Origin: Lepidodermella squamata
Taxonomy: Eukaryota > Animalia > Gastrotricha
DNA length: 64,000 nucleotides
NCBI GenBank assembly: GCA_047495785.1
Contig: JBLDXI010000064.1
Span: forward strand, 186,001-250,000
Direction: 5' to 3'
Part shown: positions 22,654-52,399 of the stretch, in pieces
Layout of the letters: the number at the start of each line of letters is the position of its first letter
Numbering within the stretch: the first letter of the stretch is position 1
Made by a program: the position numbers and the translations under genes
Notes under the pieces: model-generated
Told to the model about the DNA's origin: nothing
Database searches by the model: none
The model's input: only the letters and a program-made list of their open reading frames with translations

Positions 22654-25600
22654 ATGGTTTCTTATCACCTTGCTATGCTGCTGGCCCTAATGCTATCTTC
22701 AAGCGATGTTGCTTTAGGTAAAGAGAAGAACTGGGTTCGATGCTTCTCGCAGTTTAGCAACCGATTCACCAGCTGCAACACAGCTGCCGATGGATGTAAT
22801 CCGCTCACCGAATACCAGGTTTTTCTACTCAATGTTATCTTCGAATCATAGACAAATAATAATTTGTCTATTATTATTATTATTTGTCTATGCTTCGAAT
22901 AAAAACAGTTCATACACATTTTTCTCCATCGACAGTTAAGCTCAATTTTTCGAACAACCGGTGAATGCAACACTGGGGTATGTCAACTTTTCTGCTAAGT
23001 CTGTTTTTAATTGATTTTTCTATAGAATGCCAGGATGTGCTACAAATTCGAGGCTCTTACTCCGTTCTGCGTACCTGGCAACGTCGGCTGTAACAACCCA
23101 GGTGATATGAATGTAAGCCTCATTCCATTTTGTGAAGTCTCTAAATCAAACTATTTGTTTGCTTTTTCTCACATCGTTGAAGAAATATGATTTTTGTATT
23201 TCAGACGTTCTGGTTTAACGATCAGACTGCGACGCTGAGCTTGAAATTCAACCTCAACGAATGTGAGAAAAAGAAAGCTGCATTCGAGGTAAGATTTCCG
23301 GAAACTTGACTGTCACGGAATATGTTTCACGTTTGTTTTATTCCAGACTTCGAAATTCAGGCGCTGTACCTCGAACAATGCCATCAAGACTTGCGTTCCG
23401 GATCCGTTTTCTTGCCCCAACAACTGGGTGCGTCATTTGCACCGTCAGTGGTCTCGTATTTTGTATTCTCGTCTTCGTTTCGCCTACAGGTTACTGAATC
23501 AACTGTGTATCCGAATCTTGCGTCTTGCACTAATGGAACAGGTTTGTGGATTTGATGTACTTATTTGGTAAAAAATGTGTTAAAAAAATCGGTCAATTAA
23601 TCGTGGGGGTTAGTATTGGAGGTAGGATATTCTAAGAAATACTGTATCACAATAATTAAAAAGTTGTAGCCAGTGAGATTTGCGGATTGCCAATGCAGGC
23701 AGTGCGCCGGAAAGGATCCTCTAGCTAGGGCTATTGCGTGCTAAAAAATTTAAATCAAAAGGGAATTTCCTGTTATCTCTCCGAGGCCTCTCGAGTTGAT
23801 TTCTTGACATTTTTACATTTCCCCTTGCTTGAAAAATTGTTGAAGGTAGGGGTTAATTTAGTTATAGGGTGCTTAATTTTGGACGCCTCGCTAGCATATG
23901 TTGGAAAGGCACAGACATTTCGCTCTCGTCAAGATACTGTTTCAAGAATATAAAAAAATTGAAATTATTTTCGACCGGCATAGAGAACGTAGTGAATCAC
24001 TACGTTCTCTATGTCGACCGGGAATTAGGGAGTCCCAAACAGGGAGTTTTGTTATTTTATTTATTCAATTTATTTCTTTAATTAGGGACCTTCTTGATTC
24101 GATCATAGCCAATCATTGCCCCGTATTTCGTGTTCTATTCCAATATTTCAATTTCCCTAAAATGAAGAAGATATTTTTGCCCCCAGCTATTTCTATCGGT
24201 TTATAAAATTTGCTAAAAATCGGATATATTTCGCAATTCAGTATCGCTAATACGCTGGATACGGGGGTAACAGTGGATTTTGGAAAAAATCCAAAGATTC
24301 ATCGTGTCGTTTTTCTGCGGAATTGAATTGAAATCTAAAGCTGATGAATCGCAAATCCACGTTTTGCGGTGGATCTTTGATGAACCATTTGGACTACACA
24401 GAAACTTTGAAGACTGCTAACCAGTAGACGAGCCAATGTTGAAATGGTTAATCATAGATCCACCGTAAAACGTGGATTCTTCAGCTTTCGATTTCCCTCC
24501 CAGGACAGTCTCTTTATCCAATTTTGAACAGTCCGACGTCATTTTCAAGTCTTGCATGACATTGATTGAGGTTTTATGTTTTCGTGTTTTTCAGTCGCGG
24601 TTCCTGTGAGCGAAAAGCCGCACATCCGCTGTTTCGACTCGGCAACTGGCAAATTCAACGCCTGCCGGCCACAAAGCACTGGCTGCTTGGCTAACAATGA
24701 AACTCAGCAATATTCGACTAATGTGTTCATCAACTATCAAAGCTGCCTGCTCGGAGTAAGTCTTTTCTAATTTACTTGCAGTTGATGTCTAATTTTTTAT
24801 TTGAACAGAACGCGGTTTCATGCAAAGATTCGTCTAACCGAAGCTCATGCTACGCCGCCTGCCCTCGAGACCTAACTCAGGTGAAACTTTGAAAACTCAC
24901 GAATAAATTTTTCTATAGGCATGATTCTAAAACAGGTTAAGCTCTTCTCGGACTCGCAATCTTTCCAGCTGAACCACGGCAAGTGCATCGATGAGATAAC
25001 GCCCAAGGTGAGTTCGCATTAATTAACTTGTTCGGAATCCTGAATGTCGCTAGCTAGTCGCAAGTTCAACTGAAATTACATTTTATGGCATACGGCCTAG
25101 TTTGAGCTTTGGGTTTGATGGTATAGCAATAAGGCAATCAGTTTAGCTTCATCGCGGCTTCAATCGGACAATCGATGCAAGAAGAGCCGTGTTCCAGCAT
25201 GCTTAACGTGGATGTTCATATAGCTTTTAAATTTTCAATTCCCAAAAACTGTAAGATCTGTAAAAAGAATGGGATAGTCCCCTGGTACATTTCAATATTT
25301 TCAATCAATTTTTAGAAGTTATTTATTTTTTGATTAATTGAAAATCAACAACAACAACAAATATGATTCATTTTGTGGGTCTAACGGAAGGGAAAGAAGG
25401 GCGTGGCGTGAGGGGCGTCTCCTGGCTTTATTACTATCACTTGAAACTTGAACAAAATCGAGATGACAAAAAATGTTACCTACTGTCACATGTAAATTTT
25501 AGCCGTCTGGGTATTTCCGCTGCGTCGACAACAGCGATGGAACAGTTCACTGCGTCACGGCGTCGGCAGGCTGCAATGCGGCAACTCAGCTTCGAATTCC

Positions 25601-26018
25601 GGCTAATGTGGTCTATCCGGACGAGAACACTTGCAAGAGTGCGACCAAAAAGTACACGGTGGTGGGTTATACGGGTGGCTTATATTCGGGTAACAGAACT
25701 GACAGCGTGGCGAAATGCGCCGCAATCAATGCTACGATGGCGACGATTCGGTCTGACGCTGAGCTTGCTGCTGCTAAACAAGCGCTGACGGCGGTGGGGT
25801 ATGGTCAAGCTTGGATCGCTCTCAATCAGGAAAACAGCAAATTAAGTTGGGATGATGGCTCCAGTTTCACTCAAGCCAGCCAGTGGGTTGGTGGTGTTGG
25901 CAAATGTGGTTTCATCTCATATTACTACGCCGCCTTTGGTGCTGTCAAAGTCGATGGTTATTACTATACGGTAGCTAGTTGTAGTATCGAATTACCCGTC
26001 TTATGCGAGTCGTTTTAG
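22654..26018 (+). CDS. Secreted protein: six 4-Cys repeats + C-terminal C-type lectin-like domain (copy B), 10 exons
   Basis: Signal peptide MVSYHLAMLLALMLSSSDVALG; all exons join in frame via GT-AG; last exon 25503-26018 has C...MATIRS..E, AWIAL, WDDGS, C...C...LCE. Confidence 0.88.
24330..24495. repeat. Fold-back/MITE-like inverted repeat in an intron
   Basis: AATCCACGTTTTGCGGTGGATCT versus AGATCCACCGTAAAACGTGGATT, with further flanking complementarity. Confidence 0.65.
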
Positions 26019-28919: not shown

Positions 28920-29660
28920 ATGCTATTGAACGACGTGATATGCGATGAACCGACATCAACACAAGCGGATGAATCCAGGCAAAAATCACAGCTCAAAGGT
29001 AAGTCATTTCAGGCAAAAATTAAAACTTAAAAATTAAAGAATAATACCTGCATTTTTGGGAGATGACATTTTTAGCTTTCGAAATTCGGAAAAACATTGA
29101 AAAAAATTTCAGAAAACTTTGGAAAATTTTTCGGAATTATGCAAGGTCAATCAACAAACTAAAATTTTTACGAGGATTTATCCAATGTAAAAATTATTTA
29201 AAAAAAATTCAATTGCATTTTTTCGTAATTTATTTGAATATGTTTAGAAATATTTCTTCAATTTCCCCTTATTTGAATTTTTTGAATATTTTTCGAGATT
29301 TTTTGAATATTATTAGGAATTTTTCTAGGACTGTTTAATATCACTTTTTCAAAATCCCAATTCTAATTTTCAGGTTCGATACGGCTTAAATTACTGAGAG
29401 AGGCCTTTGATAGTTATTTTTCGCAAAATGGAACCGCGATTGGAATTGATTCGAAAATCATCGAACAACAGCAGCAGCAGGGTGTGTACAAGTTAGCTGT
29501 TCTACCGCGATTGGCTCGGCTGATCAAGCGGTTCGATCGAGCGGAACGGCACAGTCGATACGTGGCGTGCCTCAAGCGATACGGCCTCAATAAAACGGCT
29601 AGGTTAACGCTGTTGCTCGTTCAGCGATGCAGCCGCGAAGCGGCAAATCGAATTTTCTAA
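28920..29660 (+). CDS. Small two-exon protein of unknown function
   Basis: MLLNDVICDEP...SQLK(G) with GTAAG donor and TTTCAG acceptor; second exon open to TAA; AATAAA at ~29692; true start uncertain. Confidence 0.5.
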
Positions 29661-29883
29661 TGATTTAATCATTTTCAATATTTTCGAGATGAATAAAAAA
29701 AATGATGTGTTATTTCTAGAATGTTTTGAATTGTTACTTTTTCCCACGAGCGGTAATCAGTCGCGTGCTGTCAACGTGGCGCGGCCAGGAAAAATAATTT
29801 TCATGAATCAAAATAATTTTTTTTTCGGATTTTATTGAGTGGTATTGAGTTTTCAATTTAATTTGTTCATATTTTTATTTAGA

Positions 29884-32800
29884 ATGATTAGAATAGCCGT
29901 GCTAATTTTTGCGGTATTTATTACTGGCTCGTATGCTCCGCCTCCCACCCCGCTATTCGTAATTTCGCGGTTTTAATTTATTTCGCCAATTTTTGTTTTC
30001 AATTATTCCAGGATGCTCCAACTAAAGCTGTTTTGAAACAAATCAACGATCACCTGAGTGATGCTCATGGTTTAGCTAAGGTGAGTCGAAATCATTGAAT
30101 TTCAAAAAAATCTTGAAATTTCGAAAATTTAAATTTTTTTAAAAATTCCATATAATTTCAAAAAAAATTGTAAAAATTAAAAAAATGTTAAACAATTTTC
30201 ATGTAATTTTCAATTTTCAAAATAGAAGACTTAAATCGGTTTAACTGGGAATTTATAGAGAATTTAATCGAACAAAAATCATAAAATCATAAAAATTCAA
30301 TAAGGCTTAAAATTATAATTCTTTCAATTTTCATGCCATCAAAATTGTCGTTCTACTTCAAGTTGACGAATAACTTTCACCTCTGTTTTTCTATTGAAGA
30401 ATGCTGATTTTGCGTCGACGCAAGTTGTCGATTTTACTGCCAATCAAATGGTGCCGATTTTCAGCCAGCAACAGGCCGCCATGATTTACAATTACCTGCT
30501 TAACCCGAACGGTTTCACGGCGCCGGCCGATAGTGTGGTCCAAAAATGGGACAGTCCCATTTTCTACAAATTAGACGCTAGTGTACCAGGTAATAAAATG
30601 AATAGTCGGTTTTAAAAATTACGTGAAAAATTTATTTGCATTTTTTAATTTTTGGTTGAAAATTAAATTTTTAAAATTTTAACTGATTTAAATTTGTATT
30701 TTTCTTTAATATAGCCAGCCCGGACGGTGCTAAAATTGCCAATATTTTGACTGCTTTCGCTGATGCGGCGGGTGTTACGTTTCAAGAATGGCAAGGGGCG
30801 CCCAGCGGTAACGGCATCATCATCGAAAAATCAGACAGGTAAAACCTTGTTTCGCGCGGTTTTAATGAATATTCAAGCGTGAATTTTTGCTGCCAGTGAT
30901 TACGCGTTTTACGGCAAAATAGCGACCGCCGAGCCGCAGAAAATCTCCTACAGCGACGTGAAAAATTTCCTACTCGGCCTTCTCATCACTTTCGGCTTCG
31001 TGAGTTTCGAAAAATGTTTACAAAATTTTTTTGAATATTTTTGAAATTTTAGAAAAATTCGACATAAAATAGGATATTATTGAATTTTGCCATTTGACAT
31101 TCGGAAAAAATATCGGGAAAAATGTGGTACAAACGGGTAAAAAAACCGAAAATTACCGAGCCGGGTACCATCAAATTCCTTTAAGTTAATGATAAGAGAT
31201 TCTCTTATCAAAGCCTAAGACATATTTTTATTCGATATAATTTCAAAAATATGTTTTTGAAATATCTCGAATTTGAATTTTCAAATTTTCAAATTTTTTT
31301 TTTCCGAAATTTGTCTCGCTGATGAATTTTTGAATTTATTTTTTATACAGCCTCCTGAACATACCCGAATCGATCGCGATTATTCTATCACCGTTAATTG
31401 GGCCGCCATTGCCTGGTGAGTAATTGAATAATTTCATCTCATTTTAATTTTAATTCAATTTTCTAATTTTTTTCAGGGATTATCGATTTTTATTCGCAAT
31501 TATTCCATGGCACGATACGCGAGCTTCGGTGCCGTTCGATTTCGCCTCAGCCTCGCTGTTCAACCCGCATTCGTTTTCGAACGACATTTTCCTGCGCGCT
31601 TTCCTGCCGAAAGATCTGCGCGATCTGGCGACGATTGCCTCGAACAAGTATGAACTGTCGCTCGAGGACAAGAAACGGCTGTACATCCTGCAATGGGGTG
31701 AGTTAACCGAACTAGTTTAGATGTGATATTATTCTAAAAATGTCATTATTGGTTGTTGGTTATTCAAATTCTCATAATTCTCCGAAAAACCGCAATACTT
31801 TCGTGAATTATATGCGTAAATTTTGGAGCAATTTAAAATTGATAATATAGAGAAAATCGGAATTGGAGGCAAAACTGACGATTTTTTCAGCAAATCTTCT
31901 CACCTTGGAAATTGATCGAATTTTATAACGGAAAATCAATTTATTTATCAGCTGAATCTAAACTTTTTTACATTGTTAAAATTGTTAAAAAATATTATAA
32001 AAAAGAGGAAAATAAAGTTCCAAATTTTGATAAATGTGAGCGGCATTAATGCAAAATCCAGACCAAAATCAGAAGACAAAGGACAATTTTTCAGGTGAAA
32101 CCCAAATTAACTTTGGTCTTATTAAAATTAGAGGTTCCCGAGAAATTTTTCTGATCTTGAAATTTTCATGGAAACATTTCATGCCTTTTTCAAAAATGTT
32201 TTCGAAAAATATTCCGCATACCCCGGGAAAACCCGATGGTAAATGGATCGGTATTATTCAGTTTATTCCACATTTTTCCGGATTAGTATCTTCAAGGTCG
32301 TTTCTCAGACTTCTGATACATTGGAAAAATCGCAGATTTTCCAAATCGATCGCTAAAATTGATTTGAAAATCTATCGGTTTGGCTTGGTAGAAAAGGAAA
32401 ATCGAGATTTTATGCAGATGAGGAAGGGTCTTACTATTAGCGCAACCAAATTTTGGAATTTTGAATGGCATTTAAAACCACGTTTCGAAATAGTCAAAAT
32501 TGTTTTGATTGATCGGCATGATTGTCAATAAATCACCTTAAATTTCAGCGCTAAATTCTGTACAAGACGCATTCATCACCGTAAAATTCATACAACGCCT
32601 TAATTTCGTTTCGCCTTAACCTTTCGCTTACCTAAAAATAAGGTTCCGCAACAGGAAAATTTGGTTCCATTTGGTAATATATTTGTTTATTATTTGTTTA
32701 TTTATTGATAAAAATTAACCAAAAATTACAAATCAATCGAATAATTTATTTTTGGGAATAATAATTTTTTCATTAATCGGTTATTAATTTGTATAACATT

Positions 32801-35643
32801 AATTTATAGGCTCATTGTGCTCATCGACCACGCCGTCATGCTTGAACGGCGGCTTCCCTGTGCCAGCCGCCAACGCCCCCGGCAGCCCAACCTGCAGCCG
32901 ATGCATCTGCCCCAGCGGCCTATCAGGCGCCGACTGTTCAACCATCGGCGCTGCCTCATCGCCGTGCAACCAAGACGTCGTCGAAATCCCACCCTGCAAA
33001 CGCGTCTCCTTCGCCTTGCCGACGTACGCGAGCGGCGACGCGTGCACCCGGCGCTACCGAACCGCCGGCAACGGCTTCATCTTCGGCTTCGACGGCCGCC
33101 CCGGCCTGAGGTGCGGCGCCCTGAATAACGACCTGGCTTGCGAGGACTACGTCGAGGTGAGGGCAGTGGCGGCGGATGGCAAGCTGGGACCGGCGAGGCG
33201 GTTTTGCGCGTGCGGCGTCACGGCTGGCCGCGTTGCGACCATCGACACGCATGAGGTCATCGTCACGTTCCAGAGCCGAGCGGCGACCCCGGGAACGCGC
33301 GGCTTCAAGCTCAACATCTACGCCACTTGCCAGGTAAAAATATTGAAAATAATCAGAGAATTTATGCTGATTTATTTTTTAATTAATTTTTTTAATTTGG
33401 ATAACAATTGAAAAAATTCTGAGAAAATTCGAATTAATCTCACCCTCAACTTTGAATTTTTCAAATTTTAAAAATTCACAAAATTGAAATTTTGATTTCG
33501 GGAAAATTAGTGAACAAAAAATTTCGTTTGGTTTGAAGCTCCGAAAATTCTGCACTTTGAATCGAACCTTTTGGGGGATTAAACATTCCCGACAGTTTGG
33601 CCAGTACAAATTTAAAAATTAATTCGAAAAAATTAATTATAAAACATTAGGAATTTTACTCAATATTATGAAAATTGGGACTGATTTGAGAATCGCAATT
33701 TTCGAACTCTTAATTTGAATGAACCTGTGTAGAAATGCCTGGAAAATTATTTTCTGAAATTTTGAAATATAGCCTTGGACCTGACCTCTGGACCTTTAAT
33801 AAAATAGTTCATGGGATGGATAATCAATCGCATGTCTCAACGATGCAATTGCTCCATTTATCTGAAAATCCTGAAAATGTTCATAATATTTTCAAAATTT
33901 CGAATTCCTAAAAACGAAATTTTGAATTAGCAGGAAAATGAAAAAATTAATTTTTAGTCTTTTGCTCAATTTTAATTTTTTTTTATTTTTAATTTCTGAG
34001 AAATGGGTGATTTCCCGTGAATTCTTATATAAATTTTTTATGGGAATTATTCTTCCGAATTTGAATTTCGCCTGAAGAATGTTTCATGCGTGTTGTATAG
34101 GGTGTTTCGGCTACGCACTACTCGAACCGGTGCCGCATCACTCCATCCGGCTACGACTACATAGGCATTAAAAGTGTCGCTGAGAACAACAAGACGTGCA
34201 TGCCGTGGCCGCCGGGCATCATCGACGACGAGCTCAACTACCCGATGGGCGATCGCCAGGCGTCGAAACACTACTGCCGCAACCCGTACCGCCAGCAGTC
34301 GGAGCCCTTCTGCTACACGGCGGCGTCTTACATCGAAACAGCCCAGTGCAATCCGATCCCGCATTGCCGTAAGCTAAACTCCTCATTGATACTTATCGCC
34401 CAAAAGAAATTACCTTTTGGCTGTTGGCTGAGAAACAAACATTTGGCTGAGAAAGTGAAATTTTCAGAAAAATTGAGAACATTTCAAAAAAATAATGAAA
34501 TTGAAATAAAATTGAAAAAATCAACACATTTCAGAAATCAAGCATTTAAGTGCAATTTATTTTACACTTTTTCAAAATTTCAAAATGTAAAAAGTTCAAA
34601 AGTTCAAAAAATGAAAACAAAATTGCGAAAATTCCCATCTAAATCGTTGGATAGCTGTGTCATAAGGCAACCTGATTGTTAAATCAGGCAGTCCCCATTT
34701 GTAATAAATGTTTATCTCTCTTTACAATTTTATTTCAATTTAGAACAGAAGTTTTTGTATTTGAAAATGCTGAAATTTTCTCAAAGTGAAATTTTGATCA
34801 GTTCCCAATCTTAAATTTATGAAATATCGGGAATCAAGCGATTTCCAGCTCCTTGACAACCGTTGCTAAGGTGTTTGCGTCAATAATTTATTGTTGATAA
34901 CCCGCAAGAAATACGAATGATTTTTCAGACTCGAGCGTTCGATGCAACCGGCGCAACGGCGACTTCAAGGCCTGTCGTGAATACAAGCCGAACGAGCCGA
35001 AATTCGGCTGCCACCCGGACGAATCCACGGTTTGAAAAAGGCACCATGAATGCGTTTAAATTTCCAAATCTTATCGTTAAACGCAGTTGACGCCACTTCG
35101 CGTATTCCCGGACCCAGATTCGTGCAATATTAACGTAATTTCAGGCCTCTTTTGATATAGCACTGATGTCAAAAATTTGGTTTAGGGTGTGAAAATGTGC
35201 TACGACTTTGATAGCTCGACGATCAAGTGCGTTGAAACGTTCCGTCAATGCCCTGCCCCTACCAGAAAGGTTCGTGCCCAAATTCCAGCCTTCAGTTGAA
35301 TCTTCTCATTTTTGTTGAATTAAATCAGATCGGCCACATCAGCTTGTACAAGCGATTCGAGAAGAACATGCGTTTCTGTAAGATGGGCAAGGTAATATTC
35401 CTGATCTTTTGACTCACTTCCGGCGTGATTCGACCCGATTTGTAGGTTCCGCACTTCCGCTGTGTCACCTATGCTGATCCGAATTCTTTCAAAGCCTGCC
35501 GACCTGTTAGCGTTGGATGCCGCAAAAACGTCGAGGTAAGCAGCAACTGTGACCATTTGCACAAATATACTCCCGCAATTATTTTCTAGTATTCGGTTGG
35601 CGAGTACGAAGATCTAACCAGTTGCATTCCTGAGTGGCTATAA
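29884..35643 (+). CDS. Secreted inactive astacin-like protein: signal, pro-region, dead M12A domain, EGF, CUB, kringle, three 4-Cys repeats
   Basis: Spliced frame intact; GFPPEHTRIDRD astacin signature remnant; CLNGGF...CICPSGLSGADC EGF; CEDYVEVR...RFC...VTFQS...GFKL CUB; YDYIG...CMPW...YCRNP...PFCYT kringle; ends YEDLTSCIPEWL*. Confidence 0.85.
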
Positions 35644-37541
35644 AGCGACAGCTTCGACTCGAGCCATTGATTTCTCTCTCATGCGATTTTTGAAATTCAA
35701 CTATTTATTTTTCTCGCTTTTTCTGGCGGCAAGGCTCATGCTTTGAAAATTTAATAATCGAATATATTTATTTGAGTAAATTGGAAAATGAATCATTAAA
35801 TAAATTGGTCGTAATTCGTAATCTTGCTGAATATCAACCTAAATATTCAGCTAGATAACGAAAAAGTTAACAGCGAACCAAGTCTCATTTTGGTCTTTTT
35901 GATGCAATGAAAGAACCAACAGCCCTCGTGGCATCGTCGACGAGCACAGGAAATATAATGGCGTTATATTTGAATCTTGGTTCACTCAGAAAATGAATGG
36001 CTGATCAGTTGGTAACCAGAAAATTTTACATATTTCCAGGATTTCCATGAAAAAAGTAAAAAAATGGAAAATTTGAGCAGTGATCTCCTTGCCATAGCAG
36101 CGTGAAAAATTTTTCTAAATTGAATTTTTCAGTTTATCATAGAAACTTCTGTATTAAACAGGGATGGATGGTGCCCACGATGGTGCCCACCATCCATAAC
36201 TTGAGGCCGGTTGAAAAATTGCTACATAACTGGACATAGGAGACGGATAATTTGAAATTCGAAAATGAGATTGATGGACGTTCATTCTTTGATAATTTAT
36301 TCCAAATTGAGATTCACAGAAATTCATTAAGTAATTTTGTAAAATATCGAAACTTTACGTCAGTTTTCCGGGTCGACTTGAAGAAGCCGAGCAGTGATCA
36401 TCTGATGCCAATTGATTAATTTTGATTTACCCTTAGAATAGTCAACATTCAAAATCTCAATTCATTTTGCCAACTGTTGAAGCCCTCTAGCTCATGAGAA
36501 GCCCTTTCATTATTTTCATGATTTAATGATGATATACGTTAAAAGAATACCTTTAATCTATGAATGTTATTGTTTTGACAAGGTTCACGGATTGTTTTCT
36601 GGAGTTCAGCCGTTAATAAAATATCATTTTCATGTCACGCATTCGTAGTAACATTTCGAAGCACAACAAAAAACATGCGAGGATAAATCGCGAAGTGCCC
36701 TCTATCAGATCGGCCTTCTTCTATCACAGATTCGGTCGACGGTGGCGGAGATCAGCAGATCTTATTTCAAGACAATCAGCGATCCATAACATCCAAGACA
36801 TGTCCAATGATGAAAATTGAAGATTTCGCAGGCTGACGAAACGATTTGCGTGCATTTTCTTGATTTGCTCCACATCGCCGTGCGGCCAATCAATGATCGC
36901 TGGAACGTGGCGTTCACGCTCGAAGTGCCTTGGACTATAAATTCCAAGCCAAGTGGATACAGTTTAATTATAAAACAACGTACGCCCATCAGGCCACCGA
37001 CTGGAAGTGCAGTGATAGGAATGAGAGAATTATTTTTCAATAATTGAAAAAAATGAAAAAATTTGATGAGATGGGGGATCATCCCCCAGCTCGGCTGGGC
37101 CAAACAACAAAATGCGAATTTATCCCACTGTTTCGTTAATTTTGAGAGATTTTCGAGCGTGTTTCAGTGGAAAATCTTCAAAATTTTCTCCCTTCGCTTG
37201 CTTTTTAGCTGAAATGACCAGTCATTTTTGGCAAGACAATTTTTGGCGCAAATCGGGTCACCTTCAGTAATTGCATTTGTTAGAATGACCGAATTAGGAC
37301 GAGACAATTTGTTGCCAATTATTTTATAGCTGAAACGCGCTGGTTGGATAATCACTCGATTATCTCGGAAATGCCTGTTTGATAATTGGGCAATCTGGAC
37401 AATATTATTGTCCAACTCGAAATTAGGACGAAAAAATGTTAGTTCCAGGAAAATCGATGTCAAAACACGCAGTATCCCTAGTTTTCATTTCATTTTGAAG
37501 CATTATTTCGAGTTTATTCCAAGTTGAATTCGCGCATTAAA

Positions 37542-40500
37542 ATGACCGGTTCTTATTTTGTTCTTCTGGCACTTACGCTGGCGTCGATCGACGTGGCTTG
37601 GGGCGCGCAGCCGTTGAACTGGGTTCGCTGCTTCTCGCAGTTCAGCAACCGATTCACCAACTGCGTACCAGCTGCCGATGGCTGTAATCCTCTCACCGAT
37701 TATCAGGTTTTTCTTCTCAATTTTATTTTTCTTCGAAGAGCTGAGTAATTGAAATATTTCTCTATCGACAGCTGGGCTCAAGCTTACGAACAACCGGCAG
37801 TTGCAACACTGGGGTCTGTTAAGATTACCAGTAAATCTATTTTCAATTTTGGTCTGTTTTGGTCATCTATATAGAATGCCAGGATGTGCTACAAATACGT
37901 GGCTCTTACCCCGTTTTGTGTACCTGGTAACGTTGGTTGCAACAACCCTGGTGATATGAATGTAAGCCCCATCACCCAATTATTTGGAATTAAGCATCAA
38001 ACTAAAATTATTACTGTTGTTGTGATATATTGTTTCGAATATTCGCCTTAGATGTTCTGGTTCGACAATCAGAATGCGACGCTGAGCCTGAAATACAATC
38101 TCAACGAATGCGAGAAAAAGAAAGCTGCATTCGAGGTGATGCATTCAGGAAACTTTGCCCCTCTGCTGATTATGCGTTACACCTGTATCGTTACAGACTT
38201 CGAAATTCAGGCGCTGCACATCGAACAACGTCACCATGACTTGTGTCCCAGACCCGTACTCCTGCCCCAACAACTGGGTGGGCGATTTTAAAAGGTTGAT
38301 GTGTTCCTGTTTGACGCTGATTCTTGTTTTCTAGGCCACTGAATCGACTTTGTATTTAAATCTTGCGGCATGTACCAATGGAGCAGGTTCGTAAAGACCA
38401 GACTCGATTTTCGAAAACTGGAAACAGAATAATTCATCCAGTACAATTGCTATTATTTTCCGTTTGTCATCTCAGTCACAGTTCCAGTCAGCGAAAAGCC
38501 GCACATTCGGTGCTTCGATTCTGCCACCAAAAGGTTCAACGACTGCCGACCGCAAAGCTCGGGATGTTTCGCTAGCAATGAAACTCAGCAATTCTCGACC
38601 AAAGTTTACATCAACCGTGCAGCTTGCATGCTAGGAGTAATTATTTAGTCATTTTCGTTACAGCAATAAATGCGCTTGTTTTGACAGAATGCTGTTTCAT
38701 GCAAGGATTCATCCAATCGAACGTCTTGCTACGCGATTTGTCCTCAAGATCAATCTCAGGTAACCTCTCAATGAAAATCACATTTTTTCTGGTATCTACT
38801 GTTTTTCATCAACAGGTTAAGCTGTTCTCGGACTTGGGCAACTTCCAGTTGAATCACAACAAATGTATCACGGACATAACCCCGGTGGTGAGTTCTCATC
38901 GAAGCTTTCAGCCCTATGGTGTGTGCAGCTATCGTTTCACTTCCTTATAACTTATTCTTGATTGCCCGATTTGACTGCGATTACTCTTGTCCAGAAGTGG
39001 AAATAACAGGGGACCTTCAGGAAGCGCCCACCCTCTAAACGAACTCGGGGTTCCAGATCGGAGGAAAGTATATTTCTCCATGGCTAGCCAATAGAGAGTT
39101 CCCCTATTGATTCGTCAATTGAAATGCGTAAACTGGGCTAATTAGAGGGACACAGGCTGGGTTATAAGCCTATCCTAGATAATTAGCTATTTTCATTTTC
39201 CCTAATTCCAATTCTCGGAATGTTTCAATTGCTCGAAGCTATGTCAACGTCGATGTGAATAAGGCTGAAATCTGAAATTTTGGAAGTATTTCCCCCATTA
39301 CTAAGAATAACATTTTTCTTAGGAACAACTATAATCCGATCGTAGACTTTTATTTTATACAATTGACCGAAAATAAGTGATGCGGGGTTTGGCGCATTTT
39401 CCGTCTTTTCCAGCCATATTCCCAGCTGATGGCTGAAGGTTGACTTGAAAGGGAAGATTCTGGGATTTCTGGATGTTTTAAGTCGGTTTTTCTTGAGGAT
39501 TTTCAAACTTCAGATTCCTAGGAGGCTCCCATCCACCTCAAGAGACGGCAGACCCAGAAGTGACGGCGAAAAGGCTTATCGCTCCATAGGTTGACGTGGA
39601 AACACTGGCTTCATTCCATTCACATTTTGTTGAGCATATCGCAAGATTCCTCACCTCAGATCAGTGCTTTGAATTTGATTTGATTTGATTTGATTCAGAC
39701 CCTGTTTTCACTTATTTAGATTTGAAATGATTGATTTACGTGGGGAAGCATTTTGATTTGATTGATTTTGATTTAACTTTGGAAATGCAATAAAAAAACT
39801 TGACATGTACTGTGAAAATGAAATTTGTCTTCATTTTTGCAAACATTTGCTCTAGAGAGGGATGGTAGTTCCTAATTTGTGCCATTTTATCAATTGCCTG
39901 AATTTTCATAGCCCCCAACTTGGTGAAAACCCTGATTTTTCCCGATTTATTGTGATTCATCGCTGTCGATGATTTGATTTGATTGATTTAGTCCCGTAGA
40001 AGTGGGACAATGATTGATTTTGATTGATTTGAGGAGTTCCATGATTTAAGCTGTAACTCATATGAAATCAAATTCAAAGAGCTCAGCCTCAGATTCAAGA
40101 TCTGCACAAATTCTACCTTAACCTTAACTTTGAAGCCGATTTTCTCAGCAACCCTGATAGCTATCGACCTCTGTTTGATATCGTTCGACTCCTCGTTCAT
40201 CGATCTTGAAACGGCATCAAAATTTCACGACGATGTCTAAAATATCGCCAAACCCCGCTTTTCACTTATTCCCGGTCAATTTATCTATATAACATAACCA
40301 CAACATAAGTTGTATAACATACCGTATTTCTCGAAAATATACACCGGGGTATATTTGTGATTGAACCAACACATTTTTAGGGTTGTAATCGGGGTGGGGG
40401 ATATTTTCGAGGTGCGGTATATTTATGATCCATCAACAATTTTCAGAAATGTGGTAAATACTGCTAACAATAATTTCGTTTTACTGGACCAAAGCGTGAA

Positions 40501-41424
40501 AAAGAAGGATTACTTAAGCAGTTCTGGAGGTTTTATCAGTTAGTTGTAGTTCTATACGATCGGAACATACGATATCAGCCATGAAATCAGTAACATAGAA
40601 GACATTTTTCGAAAAGAATTGAACGTGAAATTCAAAATGGACCTCCCCAACTTCGCCCTTCGTGCCTCCATTGAGTTATCACTGGCAATCTTATGCCCAG
40701 CCCAAGCTAAGCAACAGGCTGATGGGGTGCGTATTTCGTTTTTTTAGTAAAATGATACGGCGCTTTGGTTTTTTTAATAACATGGGGTAGAATTTCGAGG
40801 TGCGGTATATTTATGATCAAACGGTAAGTTTTATAGGGTTGTATTCGGGGTGGGGAATATTTTCGAGGTGCGGTATATTTTCGAGAAATACGGTAGGTTG
40901 ATAATTGATAAGAAATTTCTTGATAGACCACTTACCATCGATGTCTGCAAACTGCCGACAGTTCAGTATCCTGCCGACTGAGCTCGAGCGGCTGTGATGC
41001 CAACACGGAGAGACGATTTCCAGCAAATGTTACGTTCAGCGGCGAATCGCAGTGTCAAAACGCTAAAAGGACTCTGTTTGTGTATAGTAGCGCCGGCATT
41101 AATTTCAATCATTCAGCTGCAGCCGCAAAGTGCTTGGAACTGGGCGGCGCCTTGGCAACTGTTAAAATGGCTACAGACCTGTCCCGCATGATCAGCATGT
41201 TACCTAACGACCCCAGTGTCGTTGCCTGGGTGGGTCTTGCGCCAGAGTCCGGCGTCCTTAAATGGTCGGACGGTTCGGCTGTCACATACCAATCAAATCT
41301 GTTTTATATGCCGTTGAATAATGATAAATGTGGCGTGATTTATATCGGCATTCGTTTGATGATTTTCTATGCTTGCAACACTATTAATGTCCCTTACGCA
41401 ATATGCGAAACCTATGTTGAATGA
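37542..41424 (+). CDS. Secreted protein: six 4-Cys repeats + C-type lectin-like domain (copy C), 10 exons
   Basis: Signal peptide MTGSYFVLLALTLASIDVAWG; exons 1-9 closely match copy B; last exon 40927-41424 in frame with AWVGL, WSDGS, ICE. Confidence 0.88.
39361..40281. mobile_element. Non-autonomous TIR element in the last intron of copy C
   Basis: AATTGACCGAAAATAAGTGATGCGGGGTTTGGCG versus CGCCAAACCCCGCTTTTCACTTATTCCCGGTCAATT; internal TTTGA repeats. Confidence 0.6.
40322..40893. mobile_element. Tc2/pogo-like MITE
   Basis: TA|CCGTATTTCTCGAAAATATAC ... GTATATTTTCGAGAAATACGG|TA perfect TIRs; repeated TCGAGGTGCGGTATATTT subterminal motif. Confidence 0.85.
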
Positions 41425-50440: not shown

Positions 50441-51661
50441 TTATTATCTCACCTTATTCAATAAATCAAACTAAAAGGTTTGAAAAATTTGTCAAATGAC
50501 AATGAAAATAAATGAATGATGTTTACGCGTTTATGTTATATTATTTTTCTCATTTTCGACTTCGCACAGCCACGCGATTCAATTTTTCCAAGGCGCTCGT
50601 GCGGGTTCGTTAAGAGTTGTTACGTTGCAGGTGGGAAAACAATAAATTGAATTTTTCGAAAAAACAATCCAATAAATAAGCGATGAAAAGCAATTTGTAA
50701 ATATGATTGAATTACCGTATTGAAATGGGCGGCGATGAATTAAGGCGGAAAAAAGAGTAATCAACTAATTTTAATAATTAAACCAGAAAAATCCCTCGAT
50801 AATTAGGTCATCACGGTTTATATATGAAGCAGGGCTTCTCAAACTATATAGGGGTCAGGGGTCTCCGCCAGATGAATTTGTTAAAATTAAAAAAATTCGG
50901 AAAATAGCGTTTGCTGAAGCTGAAAATGCGGCCAAGTTCTTGTAAACTATTTTTTTTTAAATATATGAAAAATGGATGTAATATGGGTTATAAACAACTT
51001 GAACGCAGAATTTCAGATTTATTAACATTAACGATATCGGTCTGTTGGGAGTATCGATTTTTGGGTCGCAAAAAAATTTTCGATTTTCCATGAATCTTTC
51101 CTGTTCTCCCAGGTTTCGCTTTTTGGGTTGCGACATTTTTTAAAATTTCAATCAATTAAAATTTCAAATTGAATTAATTTAATTTTTCCGTTGACAAAAT
51201 TTTCCACACATTTTCCTGATTTTTGAATTTTAAATATTTTAATTTTGAAATTTATATTTGCATATTGGTACATAATTATGTGGTATATTTCAACTAAAAT
51301 TATTACACTATTTTTGCACGAATGAAATTTGCACGATTTTTCCAGGTTTTCGGGTTTTCGGTCGGGGATAAGGTATGAGTTTTGAAAAAATAGAAATAGG
51401 AAAAAGTACCACATAATTATGATTATGATTATAATTACTTTTGGAGTTTTCAATGGGCCTAACACCCATTTTCGAAGCTATTAAGGATGTCATGATTGAT
51501 CGGCATAATTTTGAAATAAATTATCTTCAAATTCAGCGTCACATTCTGGATATGACGCATTCTAGACTATAGAATTCATAAATTGCCCTAATTTCTTGGA
51601 AATATTAGAAAAGCGGCCTTTTTCTTACTTAAAATTACCTACTGTCCCATGTAAATTTTAG

Positions 51662-52195
51662 CCGTCTGGGTATTTCCGCTGCGTCGACAACAGCGATGGA
51701 ACAGTTCACTGCGTCACGGCGTCGGCAGGCTGCAATGCGGCAACTAAACTTCGAATTCCGGCTAATGTGGTCTATCCGGACGAGAACACTTGCAAGAATG
51801 CGACCAAGAAGTACACGGTGGTGGTTTTTCAAGGCGACAAAAATTCTAGCTTGCCGAAATGCACCGAGATAAATGCTACATTGGCCACGATTAGGTCTGA
51901 CGATGAGCTAGCCGCAGCTAGGCTCGCGCTCCAGCAGGCTAGCTCTGCACTAGGTTCCCGGGTTGATGTTGCATGGGTCGCTCTAACCCGGCAAAACGGC
52001 ATATTCCAATGGGATGACGGATCGAGCCTCACTTTCGTCGAAACGCAATGGTATATGGCTCCATCTGTTGATGATGCGTGTGCAACTTTAGCTTATTATA
52101 CTAAAGCTGAATATGATGCGCCATCAGACGATTATTACTATGCTTTATATCTCTGTGATAGCATTGCAGATAGTGCCTTATGCGAGCATTTTTAG
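51662..52195 (+). CDS. Orphan intact terminal exon (4-Cys repeat + C-type lectin)
   Basis: TTTTAG acceptor, open frame PSGYFRCVD...ALCEHF*, AATAAA downstream; no upstream family exons nearby on this strand. Confidence 0.7.
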   Translation, partial: PSGYFRCVDNSDGTVHCVTASAGCNAATKLRIPANVVYPDENTCKNATKKYTVVVFQGDKNSSLPKCTEINATLATIRSDDELAAARLALQQASSALGSRVDVAWVALTRQNGIFQWDDGSSLTFVETQWYMAPSVDDACATLAYYTKAEYDAPSDDYYYALYLCDSIADSALCEHF

Positions 52196-52399
52196 TGAAG
52201 CTATTGAGCCTTTTTCTGATAATTTCTCGTGAGACGTTTTGCGAGCCGAAGGTAAATAATTGTATTCGATAAAAAGGAGAGATAATTGATCTGACAAAGA
52301 GCTAATCCCGTTGTGCATTTAGAAATAAAGAAGTAATAGTGAAACATGTTTGCTCTTCTTCGGGGCACTCTGATAGTGAAATTATGGAAATCATACTTG

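Follow-up and report, generated by a model that had tools for sequence, protein, structure and literature searches.

The window analysed here is a stretch of 64,000 nucleotides of contig JBLDXI010000064.1 (positions 186,001 to 250,000) from the gastrotrich Lepidodermella squamata. At 29884-35643 of the window lies a gene of 15 exons, which encodes a homologue of the astacin metalloproteases in which the active site has been lost and which we call the pseudo-astacin gene. All of its features are on the plus strand. The acceptors are all AG and the donors all GT, with consistent phases, both by direct reading and in a rebuilt model. The coding sequence comprises 2079 nucleotides, or 692 codons, and ends in a TAA stop at 35641-35643. 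In order, the product consists of a signal peptide, an astacin-like domain, a probable EGF-like plus CUB region, a kringle and three modules of four cysteines each (4-Cys modules). A search of the genome, 121.2 Mb in 151 contigs of which the window's own is designated C64, found two further intact copies of the gene, both on contig C4: one near 976 kb (L011) and one near 1350 kb (L012). All 15 exons align without a gap in the three copies, which share every splice site, the stop and an identical dead motif (described below). An earlier reading of the same DNA, hereafter the original prediction, had described a frame of about 15 exons as intact; the phase-consistent model, with its canonical splice sites and its conservation in three copies, bears this out.

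Exon 1 (29884-29958) provides the start codon and the signal peptide, in which a hydrophobic core is followed by SYA before PPP; the cleavage site was placed by eye. The signal peptide is conserved in both C4 copies. Exon 2 (30012-30080) encodes a propeptide-like segment, in frame and bounded by AG and GT, whose amino acids are identical in all three copies. By inspection, the signal peptide is typical and a C-terminal hydrophobic segment or anchor is absent, and the product is predicted to be secreted.

Exons 3 to 7 (30400-30589, 30715-30838, 30897-30999, 31351-31415 and 31477-31697) encode the astacin-like domain, of about 187 residues, which spans 30400-31697 and has neither zinc ligands nor cysteines. 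Domain searches were run exon by exon. Matches to the Pfam Astacin profile (PF01400) were weak and below threshold but collinear, exon 6 falling on profile positions 95-112 (E 0.09) and exon 7 on positions 129-181 (E 0.21); Pfam gave nothing meaningful for exons 3, 4 and 5, and a search of the PDB with exon 7 alone found no astacin match. The assignment is secured by four other comparisons. First, in the genome-wide search exon 7 matches C81:24505-24672 (E 0.0066), an exon that is itself PF01400 at E 1.6e-17. Second, exon 3 aligns with the beginning of the catalytic domain in the paralog to which that C81 exon belongs, L018 (E 5e-5). Third, a profile of eleven exon-7 equivalents (alignment A2), when searched against the PDB, matches only chains of the astacin family, in residues of about 125-200 of the catalytic domain: choriolysin 3vtg (E 3.5e-6), BMP1, the Limulus astacin, meprins and TLL1. 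Finally, the position of the intron between exons 5 and 6 is common to the active paralogs, where the break falls within the zinc motif, after HExxHxxG[LM] and before xHExxRxDRD. By sequence homology, then, the domain belongs to the astacin family (MEROPS M12A, PF01400).

The zinc motif of this domain is dead. Its first half, at the end of exon 5 (30970-30999), reads LLGLLITFGF in place of xHExxHxxGx and is identical in all three copies. Its second half, at the start of exon 6 (31351-31380), reads PPEHTRIDRD, as against xHExxRPDRD in the paralogs and as placed by the Pfam alignment. Read through, the motif is LGxxIxxGxxP: the first His is replaced by Leu, the catalytic Glu by Gly, the second His by Ile and the third by Pro. 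The Met-turn region, in exon 7 (31535-31561), reads FDFASASLF, and in the exon-7 alignments (A2) SASLF faces the SVMHY or SVMQY of the paralogs, so that the Met of the turn has become Ser and the Tyr ligand Phe. The register of the motif is fixed by the shared exon 5/6 intron and by these alignments to the paralogs. There is not a single Cys in exons 3 to 7, and all four astacin cysteines are thus gone; of the four positions where the two astacin disulfides would need a Cys, the active paralog L018 has it at all four and L019, an outgroup locus on contig C48, at two. Of the family's hallmarks, HExxHxxGxxH, the SxMHY Met-turn and the catalytic-domain disulfides are all missing, and what is retained is the Gly turn, the family-specific Glu and the RxDRD block. 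Both strings quoted in the original prediction were found as stated, with loss of the three His, the catalytic Glu, the Met and the Tyr ligand.

The conservation of the family-specific Glu and RxDRD could be taken to mean that the protein is still an enzyme, working through non-canonical residues or another metal site. We consider this very improbable, because the five metal and catalytic positions now hold Leu, Gly, Ile, Pro and Phe, which are unable to bind metal or to act as a base, and because the Met of the Met-turn is lost as well. Alternatively, the gene model itself could be wrong, with an unseen exon or an alternative splice form supplying a working zinc site; sequence is, after all, the sole basis of the model, and intron 7, with 1.1 kb, is a long one. 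However, a scan of 29000-36500 in six frames, on both strands, found no H[ED]xxH within the gene, so an alternative exon, which the original prediction had named as the finding that would speak against it, cannot restore the zinc site. Moreover, the exon 5/6 junction is the conserved intron of the family, and all exon boundaries are conserved in the three copies. The chance that the model is wrong in this way is, in our estimate, minimal.

The dN/dS analysis (ratio of nonsynonymous to synonymous divergence) suggested as a check in the original prediction was made by the method of Nei and Gojobori on the in-frame parts of the exons (687 codons, with split codons dropped), with bootstrapping. 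For the three pairwise comparisons dS was 0.140, 0.096 and 0.153, and dN/dS was 0.09, 0.12 and 0.08, with bootstrap 95% upper bounds of 0.15, 0.20 and 0.13, respectively. Over the dead astacin exons 3-7 alone, dN/dS was 0.06-0.07. Introns are about 87% identical, a divergence of about 13% that is similar to dS, and exons are 94-100% identical. The protein is under strong purifying selection, the former catalytic domain included.

These values bear on the simplest reading of a dead protease gene, that it is a silent or decaying duplicate, a pseudogene whose open frame has not yet been hit. The family does turn over, with stops in some of the paralog loci, and the protein searches with exon 8 described below returned no transcript-derived match. 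However, the 692 codons and 28 splice sites are intact in all three copies even though dS has reached 0.10-0.15, dN/dS is about 0.1 with upper bounds no higher than 0.20, and the exons are far better conserved than the introns. A pseudogene is therefore an unlikely explanation, to which we give little weight.

How the three copies are related can be read in part from their surroundings. Window positions 22296-59638 are collinear with C4:1335914-1379930 at 77-98% identity, varying block by block. The C64 gene and its counterpart at 1350 kb on C4 may be either divergent (uncollapsed) haplotypes or parts of a large segmental duplication in which patches have undergone gene conversion. The copy at 976 kb goes back to a separate duplication, of the size of the gene. 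Divergence along the gene is uneven: the window and L012 differ by a dS of 0.045 in exons 10-15 but of 0.156 in exons 3-7, and between the window and L011 the 4-Cys exons are the most diverged, with a dS of 0.25. This mosaic pattern suggests gene conversion.

Downstream of the astacin-like domain, exon 8 (32810-33333) encodes what is probably an EGF-like plus CUB region. Pfam gave no direct match for this exon; BLASTP aligned it with the EGF-CUB region of an astacin of Owenia fusiformis (E 2e-11), the CUB domain of which is recognised by Pfam at E 1.6e-12. The assignment to CUB (PF00431) is a probable one, made by way of the Owenia domain. Exon 9 (34101-34368) encodes a kringle with six cysteines, which belongs to PF00051 with a score of 41.1 bits against a curated cut-off of 34.3 (E 2.2e-10). 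Its best solved relatives in the PDB are the kringles of HGF (E 2.6e-15), and it is 99-100% identical in the other copies of the gene. On inspection of the alignment, the features of a lysine-binding kringle, namely the anionic Asp pair and the Trp before the fourth Cys, are absent, since NPYRQQSEPF stands in place of a sequence of the NPD.D..GPW type.

The kringle is not peculiar to this gene. Nematode NAS proteins include a subgroup with the layout astacin-EGF-CUB-TSP1, and pseudo-astacin has a kringle and three 4-Cys modules where those forms carry TSP1. The original prediction took this nematode layout as its frame of reference and had the kringle take the place of TSP1. The frame probably does not apply, as the host is a gastrotrich and not a nematode. 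The canonical nematode leader SL1 was not found by pattern with up to one mismatch, nor by the Rfam model RF00198, although this is weak evidence because the Rfam control matched nowhere. A taxon probe with HSP70 was uninformative, being 73-78% identical to sequences of bivalves, barnacles, tardigrades and flukes alike, and COX1 is absent from the assembly. The idea of a special replacement does not hold either, as astacin-EGF-CUB-kringle is a standard arrangement in this genome. Searches gave more than 150 kringle matches, more than 150 CUB-like matches and more than 150 matches to astacin exons, all of these being lower bounds, and at many loci astacin is followed by CUB and then by the kringle. 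HExxHxxG is kept at no fewer than 13 of these loci, most of which also have HExxRxDRD and SVMHY.

The active paralogs (for example, those on C81, C42, C74, C7, C55 and C36) share the domain order of pseudo-astacin and the intron within the zinc motif, and their kringles are 35-45% and their CUB domains about 40-48% identical to its own. They keep HExxHxxG, HExxRxDRD, SVMHY or SVMQY and the astacin cysteines; in contrast, pseudo-astacin has none of these except the Gly, the Glu and RxDRD. The tails differ as well, that of L018 ending in C-type lectin domains and that of pseudo-astacin in 4-Cys modules. L018 (C81:22001-27000, minus strand, at about 4200-540) reads HELGHALGL and SVMHY, has the cysteines, and continues into EGF, CUB, kringle and C-type lectin-like domains, so that elsewhere in this genome protease and lectin parts are directly fused.

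Closest to the gene are two loci on contig C48, with about 39% identity to it in exon 7, 40% in the CUB domain and 43-46% in the kringle. HExxH is missing from both, and their Met-turns are degenerate (SSEMY and SALMV). The one that extends past the kringle, L019, carries 4-Cys modules after it. Because these outgroups are also dead, and because L019 has the 4-Cys tail, the catalytic loss is old and the tail is a layout of the subfamily.

Outside this genome, a word-index protein search with exon 8 found nothing. An exhaustive HMMER search with the same exon against 1.84 billion representatives returned five weak matches at E <=0.001, the best at E 5.6e-8: three fragments with CUB plus kringle and one with astacin plus CUB, from metagenome or Sequence Read Archive (SRA) assemblies, and one astacin of Owenia. 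Neither an orthologue of the dead gene nor the full layout is among the matches of this exon-8 search. One of the fragments, P0002, is no more than 55% identical to anything in this genome; it therefore comes from another species, and the pairing of CUB with kringle exists outside this genome. In the literature, a 2023 review already names the kringle as one of the domains that occur attached to astacin catalytic domains (PMC9848320). The literature searches turned up no astacin pseudoprotease with a kringle, and the paper on the Lepidodermella squamata genome mentions no astacins, kringles or lectins (PMC11660948).

The C-terminal part of the product is made up of the three 4-Cys modules, each of which is split over two exons. 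Module A (exons 10 and 11, 34929-35029 and 35087-35134, together 34929-35134) was assigned from its Cys pattern by reading and has weak matches to other modules. Module B, of the MCY type (exons 12 and 13, 35186-35269 and 35329-35391, together 35186-35391), matches modules of the neighbouring lectin genes at 44686-44621, 49993-49934 and 23032-23100, with a best E of 5e-4. Module C, of the RC...F..CRP...GC type and followed by the stop (exons 14 and 15, 35446-35535 and 35590-35643, together 35446-35643), matches lectin-gene modules at 49724-49656, 46692-46615 and 24618-24701 with E values of 1e-6 to 9e-6 and 52-62% identity, as against 43% identity to the third module of the outgroup L019. In the search within the window, modules B and C together are 45-62% identical to modules of the neighbouring lectin genes.

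In its common form the module occupies a single exon. There are ten complete single-exon modules in window positions 17022-57511 (for example, 24618-24752 and 25509-25640, both on the plus strand), and an alignment of nine complete ones (A1) gives the pattern R-C-x10-C-x6-G-C-x19-C. The module belongs to no described small Cys-rich domain in Pfam or among solved structures: it has no Pfam match, no sequence match in the PDB and no Atlas lead. AlphaFold2 models it with confidence as a beta-hairpin to which a third strand and a short helix are added, with a predicted local distance difference test score (pLDDT) of 88.6. Searches for structural relatives of this model gave only Foldseek matches with E above 2 and, in VIA, a best Z of 4.1 with MbtH-like proteins, a value within the noise.

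With its dead site in an intact frame and an omega (dN/dS) of about 0.1, the gene probably encodes a protein that works by non-enzymatic means, since purifying selection of this strength points to a working product; pseudoprotease, the class proposed in the original prediction, is thus the right one. Pseudo-astacin also fits the general description of a pseudoenzyme, that is, a homologue of enzymes without catalytic residues that is kept by selection. We consider it likely that the product is a functional, non-catalytic, secreted astacin-homologue binder. The gene would have arisen within the lineage-specific astacin-EGF-CUB-kringle family, its former protease domain turning into a stable surface for binding or scaffolding, with a hydrophobic former cleft and with the Glu and RxDRD retained as a structural core. 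The retention of these residues, together with the constraint on the former active-site helix, suggests that the fold, and perhaps the cleft, is still used as a surface. The EGF-CUB region, the kringle and the three 4-Cys modules may each add protein-binding sites, which would make the protein a multivalent extracellular binder rather than a cutter.

Several points weigh against this interpretation. No significant match was obtained with exon 4 or exon 5 by itself, and these two were placed by order and by eye. The astacin fold of the dead domain is a prediction from sequence comparison, and an AlphaFold2 model of exon 7 alone, from an alignment of 11 rows, was unusable (pLDDT 43.6). The three copies may include an uncollapsed haplotype, in which case there are only two independent loci. 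Lastly, the best identity in the protein collections is 45-55%. These collections seemingly do not hold this species' own proteins, so the missing transcript-derived match says nothing about expression.

As to how such a binder might act, the roles named in the original prediction, those of a decoy, a scaffold or an inhibitor trap, are guesses. Our preferred mode, which is put forward tentatively, is that pseudo-astacin bridges ligands, or sequesters them, in an extracellular setting shared with the 4-Cys-stalk lectins that the adjoining genes encode. The next most likely mode, of somewhat lower probability, is that it serves as a decoy for, or regulates, the active astacin-CUB-kringle paralogs and would hold their substrates, activators or inhibitors, or other partners, by means of the shared non-catalytic domains and the dead cleft. 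Pseudoenzymes often regulate active relatives (PMC11266112), and the 13 or more loci of the same order that keep HExxH and the Met-turn would provide such relatives. However, the active paralogs resemble pseudo-astacin at only 25-35% identity in the astacin part and at about 40% in the CUB and kringle, levels that do not imply shared ligands. Other extracellular roles would make up the remainder.

A secreted protein that pairs kringles with a dead protease domain has a parallel in HGF and macrophage-stimulating protein, which contain kringles and a dead serine-protease domain and act by binding, HGF as a ligand. Their protease domain has the chymotrypsin-like fold and the opposite place in the domain order, whereas pseudo-astacin is a metzincin; the likeness is one of analogy only and not of relationship. 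Compared with astacins proper, such as BMP1/tolloid and the nematode NAS proteins, pseudo-astacin has the signal peptide, the pro-segment, a catalytic-type domain of about 190 residues, the Glu and RxDRD, and then the probable EGF-like and CUB domains, and it differs in having lost the zinc ligands, the catalytic Glu, the Met and Tyr of the Met-turn and the disulfides of the domain.

Another parallel is offered by ADAM11, 22 and 23 and UNC-71, extracellular proteins with M12 domains in which zinc-binding and catalytic residues are substituted and which are used for protein-protein interaction (PMC11266112). These ADAM pseudoproteases are M12B proteins anchored in the membrane, and their Met-turn is usually kept; in contrast, pseudo-astacin is of the M12A type, is predicted to be secreted and has lost the Met-turn. 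The same 2024 review of inactive metallopeptidases lists the ADAM pseudoproteases and does not list any of the astacin (M12A) type (PMC11266112). Pseudoproteases are already a recognised class, and pseudo-astacin is not a new principle; what it offers is a clean, selection-supported case among the astacins, in which the metal site, the Met-turn and even the disulfides are lost and yet constraint is strong. It comes from the Gastrotricha, a group with almost no functional genomics, and from a lineage whose large repertoire of secreted proteins was put together from astacin, CUB, kringle and C-type lectin domains and a 4-Cys module not described before. In practical terms the gain is modest: the protein is a candidate for learning what the astacin fold does without zinc, and the gene can serve as a marker of a lineage-specific family.

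The genes on either side carry the 4-Cys module as well. Upstream, a plus-strand gene at 22680-26015 encodes five 4-Cys modules followed by a C-type lectin domain (Pfam E 1.9e-7); downstream and on the same strand, a gene at 37600-41100 encodes a run of 4-Cys modules; and further lectin genes with 4-Cys stalks lie on the minus strand at 43.9-50 kb. A module-plus-lectin cassette nearly identical to that of the 22680-26015 gene recurs at 51668-52200. These lectin genes share the R-C-x10-C-x6-G-C-x19-C module with pseudo-astacin. Their modules, however, are N-terminal, mostly of one exon each and followed by a C-type lectin end, whereas those of pseudo-astacin are C-terminal and have an extra intron each.

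A link to the lectins through this shared module was part of the original prediction. The sharing itself is real, as modules B and C show, but it is not specific to the cluster: a profile of the module yields more than 1000 candidates in the genome, and the module also follows the kringle of L019, on another contig. All 150 of the candidates that were scored have E < 1e-14, and they lie mostly on C4, C64, C36 and C42. On a broader and more speculative view, for which we see a rather small probability, pseudo-astacin may form, with hundreds of lectin genes with 4-Cys stalks on C64 and C4, one exon-exchanging extracellular recognition system of gastrotrichs. The 4-Cys module would then be the common unit of assembly or docking, and the dead protease, the kringle and the lectin heads would be interchangeable binding tips on a shared scaffold.

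Two minor observations concern intron 7 of the pseudo-astacin gene. In the C4 copy at 976 kb this intron is about 1.3 kb longer. In addition, a stretch of about 170 bp within it (32483-32650), present in all three copies, is 75-77% identical to 51469-51637, which sits just upstream of the lectin cassette at 51.6 kb; the stretch is probably a dispersed repeat.

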